A DNA stretch of 64,000 nucleotides from Hemiscyllium ocellatum (lineage: Eukaryota), in contig NC_083407.1 of NCBI RefSeq assembly GCF_020745735.1, forward strand, positions 68,315,857 through 68,379,856, given 5' to 3'. How positions within the stretch are numbered: position 1 is the stretch's first letter; each line of letters starts with the position of its first letter. Made by a program: the position numbers and the translations under genes. Positions 47,801 to 53,132 of this stretch are shown one piece after another. Below the pieces are notes generated by a model. It was not told where the DNA came from, ran no database searches, and saw only the letters and a list, made by a program, of their open reading frames with translations.

Positions 47801-50800
47801 ATACTTTGCTTTGCTTTATATAAGAATATTAACACAACCAACAACAGACTATTGTGAATAAATAATATTGTAAATGTAGGCGAAAATGTTAAAGTGGTTT
47901 TGCAGATTTAGTAATTTCCTGCTTAGCAATTTGATAAATGGACGCATAAATACAAACGCATTACGGCAAAGACTTACGAAATAATATTACTAATTAATGT
48001 TGCTTTTAACATAGCCGGTATAATGCGACGGCAAATGTAAGGTGCCAATGAATGGGCTGCACAAGTTGCTGACACTGAGCTGAGGATACTGTAGTAAATG
48101 AAAAAGAGACTTCCTGGTGAAAACACTTTGAGCTATGCGTTACTCATTCAAATATAACACTATTTTCTGATTGCTGTTCAGTTTTGAGATAATAATTTGG
48201 ATATAAATACCAGTTCTGTATTGTGCAGGCCTCAGGACCCCGAGAATTCTCTCGTTCAAGGCCGCAAGAAATATTTGTCTGCATCGGGCCTTGTCTTTCT
48301 TACTTCCTAAGTCACCATCCCTAGGCGTTTTGCTTTTCGTCGCTTACAAAATCACAATTGGTTTGACTTTGTTCACCATGAATTCGAATCTTATTTATAT
48401 TATGAGGAGGTGTATTGTAATAAAGGCACACTGTTGGCTCTCGTTCAACAATTCCTTGTATACATAAACAAACCATCCAGCTTAGCCTATTGCTCCCAGC
48501 AGTTGTTGAATCATCATATTACTCCAGATACAGTCGCTGTATTCATTATAAATAGTGACTGTGAAATGTTATTTTACTTGGAGACAAACTGTATTCACGT
48601 TTACACTAATCAGGCGTTATGGTTTTCCGTTATGATATTTGACGAGGGTAAAAATAATGCCAAAATAAGTGCACCAAGTGTTTTATTTTCCAGTTTATAT
48701 ATATATTTAAGCATGTTACAAAATCATTCTAAAACACCCAAAACAACAACTGGTTTCCCTTACCCTACTACTCCTGGCCTTGCCTGAAGGATTAGTTTTG
48801 CTTCAATCCATACCAACTCCCATTTTAATTCAGACGGCGAATTAACTAATAAGAGCATTGTTATTGATGTCTCATTGATTCAAATAGTTGCATTACATAC
48901 TCTGTCTTATCGCGCGTCTCTTAAGTTATTCTTTCAGTTCTGCTGAATGATTTCACGCAGAAAAAATACAGTTGAAGAACATTCAAAGCCAAGTTGTTGC
49001 CTTTTGCTCACACAAGATTAGGTGTTAAGAACCGAATTGTGATTTATTTGGAATGAATAAGATTCAGATAATTATGTATAACTTGAAATATTAATTGATT
49101 GCAATGATTTGTATGTGCGACGCAACATCAAGGCATAGTGTACGAAGTTATGGTTTAGAATCGGTGCTCGCTTCAACTGAGCCTAAAACTTACCAGTGCA
49201 CGGCGCCTGAAAGTTAACCGTACAGATTTGGATCACAAAGCCTATCAAATCAAAAATGACGTTGTAAAATAAAGAGCCGCAAATAATCTACGGAAATGGC
49301 CTTATATTCTCTTCAACATGACTTACAATTCCCGCAGGTATTTATACGTCTTCTTGTTCATTTTGAATATCTGTAGAATGTTTGAAGTTTAATTTAGGCT
49401 AACATTCGCAAAATCCGACAACATTTTCAACAGTACATTTGCATCCCAAAAGAAGTAGAGAGGAACCGTGACAGCCTTGACCCTGACACTGTCCCCTTTC
49501 CTGTTCGTCTTGCTGAGAAGAAAATCTCGTCGGCTCTGTGTGTACTTCCCATAGCTGCTCCATAGCTGATGCCCATCGTGGTTTACATTATCTTGAATTC
49601 CAAAGGATTCACCCATGACCGGAAGTAGGTATGTACTGTTAAACAGCAAATTTTCTCCAGTTGGAGAGTTCTGAAAAATAGCTGCAAGCGGTGTTAACAC
49701 AGTTCTGCAACTCCATCAACAAGAGGAATCCCGAAAATAACAAGCACTATCACTGCTGGCGCTGGGGAGAAAATACGGTGTGTGTCCTTCCGTTGTTTTT
49801 GGCGATGTTTTGGTTGTTGATTGTTGGAACATGTCCAATCTAGTTACCAACAGCTCAGCATAAACATGTGAGAGAATTAGAAAATTAAGATCTATTTTTA
49901 GGATAAGCTCGTTGAGACCAAACACTAGAAGCACCGACTAAATTTATACCCCCTAAATTAATAGCAAGGATCGCAAATCGTATTTTTGCTCAGCCAGTGT
50001 TGGAAGGTGTCTGTGCAAATGTTCAAATGCAATTACATTATAGAAGTGTTTGGCGTCAACATCTGAAAGCCTGCACTCTAGCTACCTTAATGGAAAGTAC
50101 AGAGCGTAAGATGTTTTACGGAAATTCAAATGTGGACTCTTATCGCCGCTGGTAAAGGTCAATTTTCGGAACTTACATTAGTTTTATTATACATCGAAAT
50201 GTTTTTCATGTTTTCCACTAATTATAATTGAATGCTATCCGGGAAAAAGTTGGACCAGTGAATGCAGATAAAAAAATACAAAAAAAATTCTTACACTGAT
50301 TTCACCAAATGTTTGGTTCACATCAGAGCAAGGTGCATGGTCTCTCGGTTTATATACATCTAAAAGCCGTGTTATGCACCATGCAAGCAATTGATGCACC
50401 GCCGGCCTCGCTGAAACTGCAAAAAACAATCAGATCAGAAACCTGCTATGTACACGTTTCATTTCGCCGACATTTTCAAACAAGGACTATGTTTTAATTT
50501 CCAAAGTCCAGAAATTACAGCGATTTTTTTCTTCTATCCTTTTCTTTCAGTTTATCGAAAACGAAATGATTGGATTTTAGCAGCACGATCATCACTGTTG
50601 TTTGAGGTAAGATTATACAATATGAGGAATGGCTTTGATGAAACGTTTGAGTCCTGGTCGGTGTGGGGATTAAATGAGCTGGAGTGGGTGCCGCTTTTGA
50701 AATGCTGTTGTAGGTGTCGCTGTTGTCCACAGTTAAGCTCAAATTCAACCGGTTGTGGATCATGTGATGTACGGGGAGGTAGTGCTTCAAGGCCATTTTC

Positions 50801-50923
50801 AAATTCCATTGGCCCAGTAGTCATGTGATTCTACCGAGGCATCCACAATTACACAGGGAATGTTTTGTTAGAGATGTCAGCTTACAAAGGACATCATCTG
50901 CCTCCTTCAAATTACTCTTCAAA

Positions 50924-51662
50924 ATGTCCTGCCCCAATAGCTCTCCCGCTACGAACTCGTTTTTAGTAGATTCCCTGATTAGTGCGTGTCGGGGTGACGG
51001 TTTCTATTCAAGCAGCTCTATGTACATGCCATCGAGCACGGATATGGGAACTTACGGAATGCAGACCTGTGGACTGCTCCCGACCATGACTAAACGAGGA
51101 GAGGTTAGCCATCAAAATATGAGCATCAGCGTTCATCCGTATATATCTCAGGTAGATGGCTGGCCTGATCATTCCAGACCATGCCGAATTGAACAACCTG
51201 TTACTCCACAGATGCCCACGTGCTCCTTCCCTGCTAGCATAAAGGAGGAAAGCACTTGCTGCATGTATAATTCAGATAAACGGGCGAAACTCAATCCGAC
51301 CGCAATCTCTACCTATCCCAGACTGGTGTCCGAAAACTGTTCGATTGAAAATCCTGAGATTCCCATCCCGGGATATTTCAGACTCTGTCAGGCTTATCCA
51401 TTGGAGAAAAGCCTGGATTATAGTCAAGCTGGGGAGATCCGTTCAAATGTAATGCCGCAGTCAAATCTAGGGCTTATCAGTAAACTCCAGGTATCCAACC
51501 AGTCACCAATGGAAGGGAAAATAAACGAGAAGCCAAATGCGCAGGAATCCATTAAGGGGATTTATGTGGAAACTCCTGAACCAAAGCCGAGTTTAGTGGA
51601 GGCCAGTGTACCCGTTGAGGAAGCCGAATCTGGCTCGGAACTGTCGGATAACGAGACTAAAG
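50924..51662 (+). CDS. hoxd10: Homeobox D10, exon 1
   Basis: Contains [23 protein letters not shown] and [13 protein letters not shown]; phase-1 donor AAA G|gtgagc. Confidence 0.96.
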
Positions 51663-52860
51663 GTGAGCATTTAAAACATTGACTGTGAACATGGTAACAT
51701 CGTACAGCCGATCCAAAAGCTTACATAGTCACTGCAATGCATAACTTTGTTAGAGCAGTATATTTGACTGGTTTATGTGTATTTCTGATCACCTATAATT
51801 ACAAACGAGAAAAAAGTCTGATAAATGTCGTATAAAAGGATAGCTTTATTTTATGACATGTTGGAAAATATGCTCCGTAATACTATTACATTGTTAATGA
51901 CGTAGCAAAAGCCAACAAATCATTTACAGATGTCAGTCTAACCTTGATAATTTCATTTTAGTGTTGCCATGTCTCCTAGTCCACTCCTAAGGTTCAACCC
52001 GAAAGTTTTAGCATCATGAACTACAAATATTAAGAATACCTATTTCTATATTTAGGGCCACAGTGCAAGCCCAGCCTTACTCACTCTGTTGTGAAAAGTA
52101 AGCTACTTCCACCATTTGCTGACTTGGAAAGATTCGATGGGAAAGTGCTAGTCGCAGTTAGAACGGTCATTTTCCCTGGTATAGTTTATGTTGGATATGT
52201 AACATATTACAATGAGATGTGATAGAAGTTTCATACTAAGAACGTGAAATATTGCTAGCACGTACAATCATAAATTCCAATTAACCTGCTCGATAAATGG
52301 CAGCGATAGTATGTTTAATAGACTAAGATTTACCTCAGGAATTATTGTCATAGCCACATAGGTTTGTACTGTCAGGATTTTGCAATCATTAAATTTACGT
52401 TATGAAGTTGAAAAACGACTTATTGGTGAAAAGCCTGTCGGTGCAACTAACCTACGTCTTTACATTTCATTCACAAGTAATAGTATTGCCTACTAATCAT
52501 ACATCGTACCTGAAGAATTGTCTGATTTCCGTGCACCTTTAATGCTCTGGTACATATTTTACAATTCGCAAAGAAAGCTACCCCAAAACCTGAGATATAA
52601 TAATCTTTGTCAATATCTAAAGGATTTTAAAGAAAATTTCCTTGCGTTAATAAGAGATTCGATCTTTGGATTACCCCAAATTGTGTGTTTATTTGTTTTC
52701 TCTATTTGGCAACAAGCGAAGAACGTGCAGAGGTTTGCTGCGCTGTGTATGACTTAAGATGTCAGGATTATGTTCAACCGTACTGTTTGGGTTTTGCTTG
52801 AATTATTCTGTTAAAGACATGTTCGCTAAAATCTCATTTCTTATTTCTTATTTCTGCTAG

Positions 52861-53132
52861 AAGAGATCAAAACTCCAATCAGCAACTGGCTAACAGCAAA
52901 GAGTGGGAGGAAGAAGAGATGTCCTTATACAAAATATCAGACACTGGAATTAGAAAAAGAGTTTTTATTTAATATGTATCTGACTCGTGAGCGCCGTCTA
53001 GAGATAAGTAAGAGCGTGAATCTGACCGACAGACAAGTCAAGATCTGGTTTCAAAATCGCAGAATGAAGCTGAAGAAAATGAACCGGGAAACTCGAATTC
53101 GAGAACTGACCACGAATCTAACCTTCTCTTGA
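52861..53132 (+). CDS. hoxd10: Homeobox D10, exon 2
   Basis: Acceptor ctgctag|AA. Encodes [92 protein letters not shown] 1011 nt (336 aa). Confidence 0.97.

Follow-up and report, generated by a model that had tools for sequence, protein, structure and literature searches.

The shark hoxd10 counterpart of the HOXA10 N-terminal leader lies out of frame and probably acts as an overlapping brake on translation

The Hox10 genes, whose dosage matters, specify lumbar, sacral and hindlimb identity. The hoxd10 gene of the shark Hemiscyllium ocellatum raises a simple question; why does its leader carry two upstream AUG codons in quick succession, the second of which opens a reading frame that runs across the start of the protein itself? 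The stretch of DNA analysed here (the window, 64,000 nucleotides) holds the posterior HoxD cluster, with evx2 on the minus strand followed by hoxd13, hoxd12, hoxd11, hoxd10 and hoxd9 on the plus strand, and the features around the hoxd10 start are collected in Table 1. We consider it probable that this leader is the shark copy of a very old group-10 module with two AUGs, and that the second upstream open reading frame (uORF2) acts in cis as an overlapping brake on translation.

Table 1. Positions of hoxd10 leader and gene features in the window
Feature	Position	Strand	Basis or detail
Ultraconserved promoter-proximal/leader block	50776..50859	+	7-species D10 alignment A1
GCCATTTT motif	50792-50799	+	Motif scan of leader
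Inverted CCAAT box, ATTGG	50808-50812	+	Motif scan of leader
CATGTG	50822-50827	+	Motif scan of leader
ATG-TGA start-stop	50823..50828	+	Inside CATGTG motif (GTCATGTG, invariant)
CACAATTACAC with AATTA core	50844-50854	+	Motif scan of leader
uORF1	50860..50871	+	ATG TTT TGT TAG, MFC*, 3 codons and stop, context GGGAATGT
uORF2	50874..50966	+	30 codons and TAG (50964-50966), context GAGATGT
CAAATTA motif in uORF2	50908..50914	+	Invariant in D10, A10 and B10 leaders of alignment A2
hoxd10 main ATG	50924-50926	+	Context TCAAAATGT, A at -3
hoxd10 exon 1 coding sequence	50924..51662	+	99% identity to Chiloscyllium punctatum Hox-D10a
hoxd10 exon 1 donor	right after 51662	+	G, then GTGAG
hoxd10 exon 2	about 52860-53132	+	Homeobox within exon 2, 53028-53071

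The arrangement can be read base by base. The stop codon of uORF1 is followed by two bases, AG, and then by the ATG of uORF2 (50874-50876), which lies 50 nt 5' of the main ATG in a frame offset by 2 (50 mod 3 = 2); the TAG of uORF2 sits 43 nt into the hoxd10 coding sequence, within the codons of the FLVD motif. With an ATG at 50874, the main ATG at 50924 and a stop at 50964-50966, uORF2 is an overlapping uORF out of frame with the protein, and the open reading frame listing of the window gives its frame as 50865..50966, with an identical end. At both 50874 and 50860 the start context has G at -3 and T at +4; in other words, both starts have the suboptimal context, without G at +4, of the conserved Hox uORF class discussed below. 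The coordinates, frame, length and stop that a first-pass annotation of this DNA had given for uORF2 are exact to the base, with the peptide reproduced, and the tiny uORF MFC* that it placed at 50860-50871 is read directly in the sequence. That annotation also allowed that a base might be missing, such that the offset would be a sequence error. For several DNA runs of this shark, the contigs contain a fraction of 1.00 of the sampled words from 50560-50923; the runs come from a single study and may include the source of the assembly itself. Since all sampled leader words are found there, the one-base offset is not an assembly slip.

Is the leader part of the mRNA? A batoid Logan contig (L007), whose product is 88% identical to a stingray D10, encodes the full 336-residue product contiguously and without an intron, so it represents spliced mRNA, and its leader of 148 nt includes both upstream AUGs and the CCAAT box. 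None of the sequencing runs that match this region is on record as RNA. In one small run from a related organism the share of words present is 0.79 for 50600-51700 and 0.66 for 50560-50923; this could be RNA reaching ~220 nt upstream, or DNA, and is uninformative on the transcription start. The rat hoxd10 leader carries both uORFs. Among the Hox mRNAs with conserved uORFs described by Ivanov et al. 2022 (PNAS, PMC8892498), 13 in all and with CAGE-defined mouse leaders, is Hoxd10 itself, with an AUG in suboptimal context, and the shark upstream AUGs have the same kind of context. That paper reports ribosome footprints on the uORFs scored, inhibition of Hoxa1, Hoxa9 and Hoxa11 reporters by such uORFs, and a response to the levels of eIF1 and eIF5; the functional tests it describes are on Hox leaders other than Hoxd10. 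It terms the Hoxd10 uORF conserved 'from mammals to tetrapods', its conservation criterion being 90% of placental mammals, and its main text neither states which Hoxd10 uORF was scored nor draws a link between that uORF and the HOXA10 leader. The subject of a further paper (PMC4890304) is non-overlapping uORFs, and a targeted literature search on the HOXA10 leader peptide, or on Hox10 with uORF, found nothing.

How old is the hoxd10 arrangement? Exact protein look-up provided hoxd10 loci from Callorhinchus (L004), alligator gar (L005), rat (L006), milkfish (L008) and python (L009), to which the batoid contig can be added. In shark, batoid, chimaera, python and rat alike, the tiny uORF lies at -64 (reading MFS* in python and rat) and the second ATG at -50, opening 30 codons in the same frame with the same TAG; a snake and a mammal have thus retained the overlapping form, the rat standing alone for placental mammals. 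Whereas the conservation reported by Ivanov et al. 2022 reaches tetrapod depth, the uORF is found here in two elasmobranchs and a chimaera as well, so its age is at least that of the jawed-vertebrate ancestor. The claim of the first-pass annotation that the uORF is conserved holds for these five jawed vertebrates, whose identical layout in independent sources goes beyond chance, but not for every lineage. In gar and milkfish the spacing to the main ATG is 48 and 49 nt, respectively, uORF2 is cut to 11 codons by a TAA before the main ATG and no longer overlaps, and the ATG of uORF1 has become ATT. Additionally, the upstream ATG is annotated in frame in the electric ray Narcine, whose D10 has a 16-residue head, in a teleost contig cluster (19-residue head), in a flagged gecko model and in a 'low quality' sole model. 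Judged from these sequences, the hoxd10 upstream AUG is very stable, and its out-of-frame overlap prevails among cartilaginous fishes and tetrapods without being universal; ray-finned fishes, on the same comparison, carry a derived short form, which would explain why the uORF was scored in tetrapods only. In both gar (L005:1953-2000) and milkfish (L008:1452-1500) the loss of the uORF1 ATG, the loss of CAAATTA and the truncating TAA occur together; as this is a single lineage, the three changes may be coupled or may coincide by chance.

The first-pass annotation had suggested that uORF2 resembles a frameshifted HOXA10 N-terminus, and this proposal is borne out by the DNA. An alignment of A10, B10 and D10 leaders (A2) has four invariant islands, namely ATTGG, GA.ATGTCA, CAAATT and the main ATGTC, and the sole gap between the D10 and A10 leaders is 1 nt immediately 5' of the main ATG. 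With the ATG held fixed, the D10-A10 leader alignment scores 18-19 against -3 +/- 3.6 for shuffles, none of 5000 shuffles scoring as high, and translation of both from the upstream ATG gives the same residue at 9 of 17 positions. The single base can be located precisely; CAAATTA, which the A2 leaders carry in shark, chimaera, rat and gar A10 and which is altered in gar and milkfish D10, stands 9 nt from the main ATG in D10 and 10 nt from it in A10 and B10. On this alignment evidence, the first 17 codons of hoxd10 uORF2 are the homologue of the HOXA10 leader, in the equivalent position before the inner start. The two share that position, the ATGTCAGC start with its context, and CAAATTA, but they differ in what is made of it. 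In bony vertebrates HOXA10 has 51 nt between the two ATGs, in frame and open, so that a conserved protein head (MSARKGYLLPSPNY.TT, then the inner MSCS) is encoded, whereas hoxd10, with 50 nt, is out of frame and gains no N-terminal extension. The 17-residue in-frame leader that the first-pass annotation had given for human HOXA10 is indeed widespread, the MSARKGYLLPSPNY-type leader being present in 89 of the 120 HOXA10 proteins listed, mostly from bony vertebrates. Its form is MSARK(G/E)YLL(P/S)SP(N/K)Y... before an inner M[S/A/T]C, most positions are kept in >85%, and the rare length variants differ by whole residues. The in-frame spacing of 51 nt is confirmed in gar hoxa10 DNA (L010), which also has a counterpart of the D10 tiny uORF, ATGTTTTGC, 16 nt before the start.

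What do the other Hox10 genes of this shark do with the same start? The assembly scanned for paralogues comprises 3.98 Gb. Its hoxa10 (L002:2070-2121, minus strand; contig C5 of genome G000, near 28119039) places the ATGTCAGC start 51 nt upstream of the main ATG, at the in-frame spacing, but a TGA at codon 4 and a TAG at codon 7 reduce it to MSA*; past these stops it would read LLLSPNYPTT, almost the human-type leader. A third Hox10 gene (L003:1437-1503, G000 contig C110) has the leader start ATGTCAGTTTGA, which reads MSV* and spans 3 codons. Its best matches are chondrichthyan Hox-B10 proteins, including Callorhinchus HoxB10, so it is hoxb10, and the assignment to hoxc10 was ruled out on the same grounds. 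The same ATGTCAGTTTGA 3-codon uORF is found in Callorhinchus hoxb10 (L011:1452-1503), and by this comparison it is kept across cartilaginous fishes. Searches of the assembly with shark D10 exon 1 and with a Heterodontus Hox-C10-like exon 1 matched D10 and A10 only and found no hoxc10; the HoxC cluster may be missing from this genome or unassembled in it. The MSA-type ATG has G at -3 and T at +4 in every D10, A10, B10 and lamprey leader examined.

The lamprey enters through an outgroup search of a representative library, for which the profile (A3) was built from parts of exon 1 only. In hagfish Hox10IV a leader of 16 residues, starting MSAWTG..., precedes an inner Met, and in a Lethenteron lamprey Hox10 protein the leader starts MSAWKA... 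and is 31 residues long. At the DNA level the lamprey locus (L012) has, in this order, a CCAAT box, CACGTG, a tiny uORF ATGTTTTCTTCGTGA (MFSS*), 3 nt, and an MSA-type ATG ATGTCGGCG. That ATG (ATGTCGGCGTGG) is in frame and open for 93 nt up to the inner ATG, and in a comparison of the 50 nt around it with rat D10, only 1 of 5000 shuffles scored as well. These lamprey and hagfish counterparts suggest that the two-AUG layout probably predates the split between cyclostomes and gnathostomes.

In which direction did the change run? The first-pass annotation proposed that an ancestral in-frame Hox10 start became the D10 uORF, and we incline to agree, although the evidence is divided. The start is in frame in lamprey, hagfish and bony-vertebrate HOXA10, and the spacing of 10 nt after CAAATTA is common to A10 and B10, against 9 nt in D10. 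On the other side, shark A10 and shark and chimaera B10 stop at codon 4, which is TGA in all three; cyclostomes have TGG there, bony A10 has AGA and D10 has TAC, so a minimal uORF could be old too. Additionally, two outgroups would both be in frame by chance about 1 time in 9, and a GC-rich lamprey leader easily stays open.

How would such a leader act? D10 spacing is one base short of the 51 nt (17 codons) of A10, and so the second AUG opens an out-of-frame ORF over the main AUG. Ribosomes initiating at 50874 would be unable to initiate at 50924 and would terminate too far downstream to return, such that, by the scanning model and by the behaviour of other Hox leaders, each initiation at 50874 would be lost to HoxD10 synthesis. 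The context at 50874 is middling (G at -3, U at +4), and part of the ribosomes would be expected to leak past it to the main AUG, which has A at -3; leaky scanning of this kind would tie HoxD10 output to how stringently start codons are selected, as for other Hox uORFs. The role of uORF1 may be the opposite. Only 2 nt separate its stop from the second AUG, and ribosomes that have translated it would probably skip that AUG and might reinitiate 52 nt later at the main one, in which case uORF1 would soften the brake. The 30-residue peptide of uORF2 would probably be a by-product. Attenuation in the shark, leaky scanning and the bypass role of uORF1 are what we infer by analogy with leaders studied elsewhere.

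A similar known layout is that of the ATF4-type leader, where a short permissive uORF1 precedes an inhibitory uORF2 that extends over the coding start in another frame. The hoxd10 leader matches it in having a first uORF of 3 codons and a longer second one that covers the main start in another frame, but the distance from the uORF1 stop to the second AUG is 2 nt in hoxd10 compared with roughly 90 nt in ATF4. With a gap of 2 nt, delayed reinitiation under eIF2 phosphorylation cannot work as it does in ATF4, and uORF1 would instead shunt ribosomes past the second AUG. We know of no stress regulation of Hoxd10 translation.

Several observations count against reading uORF2 as a brake, among them the frame relation described above, which is not universal. 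An inverted CCAAT box lies only 66 nt before the ATG at 50874 (the distance from ATTGG to the MSA-type ATG is 65-68 nt in the D10 and A10 leaders examined), and, should it mark the core promoter, part of the transcripts could begin close to the upstream AUGs or past them. Moreover, about 150 nt 5' of the main ATG are nearly invariant across jawed vertebrates (alignment A1, 7 species), and with a whole block ultraconserved beyond the uORFs, constraint at the DNA level alone could carry the ATGs along. The alternative that follows is that the block is a promoter-proximal regulatory element, with CCAAT, E-box-like and homeodomain-type sites, in which the ATGs are passengers without a translational role. 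We take GCCATTTT to be a putative YY1-like site and the AATTA core of CACAATTACAC to be a putative site of homeodomain type. In keeping with such an element, hardly anything changes between shark and rat from 50776 up to the main ATG, even in the parts outside the ORFs, CAAATTA and ATTGG are common to the paralogues in A2, an RNA structure signal is absent, and codons 2-17 of uORF2 vary at 5, 3 and 5 sites in codon positions 1, 2 and 3 among five species (a small sample), with no coding signature. What speaks against the ATGs being mere passengers is their survival where the surroundings have diverged; in B10, lamprey and shark A10, ATGTC(A/G)G is still there with G at -3 and T at +4, with either an open frame or an immediate stop after it. 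The ATG is also within the spliced batoid mRNA and, by the account in PMC8892498, within a CAGE-defined mouse leader. As a full explanation of the upstream ATGs, then, the regulatory element seems unlikely to us; a role of the block as DNA is nevertheless likely in addition, the DNA-level and translational explanations being non-exclusive.

A structured RNA element in the leader, whether IRES-like or inhibitory, was rejected on the strength of a structure z-score of -0.26 against shuffles, a covariation term of +0.74 kcal/mol, which gives no covariation, and no Rfam match in the window. A scan for bacterial promoters and terminators, whose models are irrelevant to a vertebrate gene, found nothing.

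Could the 30-residue product of uORF2 instead be a functional micropeptide? Its frame and length are retained in five distant species and its first seven residues, MSAYKGH, are almost invariant, but the substitutions do not look like those of a peptide under selection. The synonymous bias sought at codons 2-17 is not there, with no excess at third positions in the counts given above, and no purifying selection at the amino-acid level is seen over these codons in the five species, a weak negative given their number. Residues 8-16 vary freely among D10 orthologues (H, P, L or N at residue 8; Y, C or S at residue 14), and the last 13 residues are set by the overlapping hoxd10 codons. In addition, the peptide is shortened to 11 residues in gar and milkfish and joined in frame to the protein in other lineages, and the HOXA10 leader, read as protein, is far better kept. 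In other words, the drift of residues 8-16 and the spread of variable sites indicate that the HOXA10 leader behaves as coding sequence and its D10 counterpart does not, and the micropeptide that the first-pass annotation offered as an option is very improbable. Weakest of all is the idea that the upstream ATG is the true hoxd10 start, the offset reflecting an assembly error or a ribosomal -1 slip on the CAAAA run that would yield an extended HoxD10; the single-base offset does adjoin an A run invariant in all D10 sequences, and annotation gives Narcine and some teleosts a head in frame, but the 50-nt spacing recurs in four other species from independent assemblies and one mRNA contig, the leader words sampled are all in the DNA runs, a canonical slippery heptamer and a downstream structure are both absent, and codons 8-16 are without protein-level constraint, so that we hardly credit it.

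Returning to uORF2 as a probable brake, a broader reading takes in the whole paralogue group. We put forward, tentatively and with slightly more doubt than confidence, that group-10 Hox genes have kept a two-part leader module since before lampreys and jawed vertebrates parted, and that its output has been rewired repeatedly by single-base changes. Its two parts would be a uORF of 3-4 codons and, 2-3 nt after the stop of this uORF, a second AUG in fixed G(-3)/U(+4) context. The same AUG would then be resolved in different ways: as an in-frame head in bony HOXA10 (17 residues) and as an in-frame leader in the cyclostomes lamprey and hagfish, as a 3-codon uORF in chondrichthyan A10, seen in the shark, and in chondrichthyan hoxb10, and as an overlapping brake in HOXD10. 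If this is true, the conserved thing is the choice point between start codons, and the paralogues differ in dosage control through it.

A conserved Hoxd10 uORF in tetrapods is already known (PMC8892498). As far as the literature was searched, its presence in cartilaginous fishes and the derived form that ray-finned fishes carry appear to be new. The same holds for the base-by-base homology to the HOXA10 head, for the different outcomes in the A10, B10 and D10 genes, and for the lamprey counterpart with its tiny uORF. The Hoxd10 uORF would date back to the jawed-vertebrate ancestor instead of the reported tetrapod depth. If our reading is right, HoxD10 synthesis in all jawed vertebrates goes through a choice between start codons that is >450 million years old, and what HOXA10 carries as its extra head is this same element, read in frame. 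We are drawn to the natural series that would result, from in-frame head to 3-codon uORF to overlapping uORF, each a few base changes apart, as it allows one to study the conversion of an alternative start into a uORF and the reverse.

Several smaller features of the leader deserve mention. AGGACAT (50888-50894, within uORF2) is the exact reverse complement of ATGTCCT (50924-50930, at the main start), a possible 7-bp stem that would enclose the main AUG and that is absent from the A10 leader; both sides are almost invariant, and there is therefore no covariation by which to judge it. Further upstream, the ATG at 50823 (the upstream ATG at -101) is invariant in all 7 D10 sequences and included in the batoid contig; it gives an immediate start-stop in the shark, and in chimaera, batoid and python the corresponding ATG starts a frame of 47 codons reaching into uORF2. 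The 50823 start-stop is relevant only if transcription starts upstream of it. The main hoxd10 frame is itself open 5' as far as 50825, with no in-frame ATG in 50825-50923. In mammals, birds and some teleosts, gene models or ORF calls on contigs make HoxD10 longer by 54 to 77 residues (e.g. P0029 and P0012); the extensions run through this conserved stretch and look like artefacts that arise in annotation when ultraconserved DNA happens to hold an open frame.
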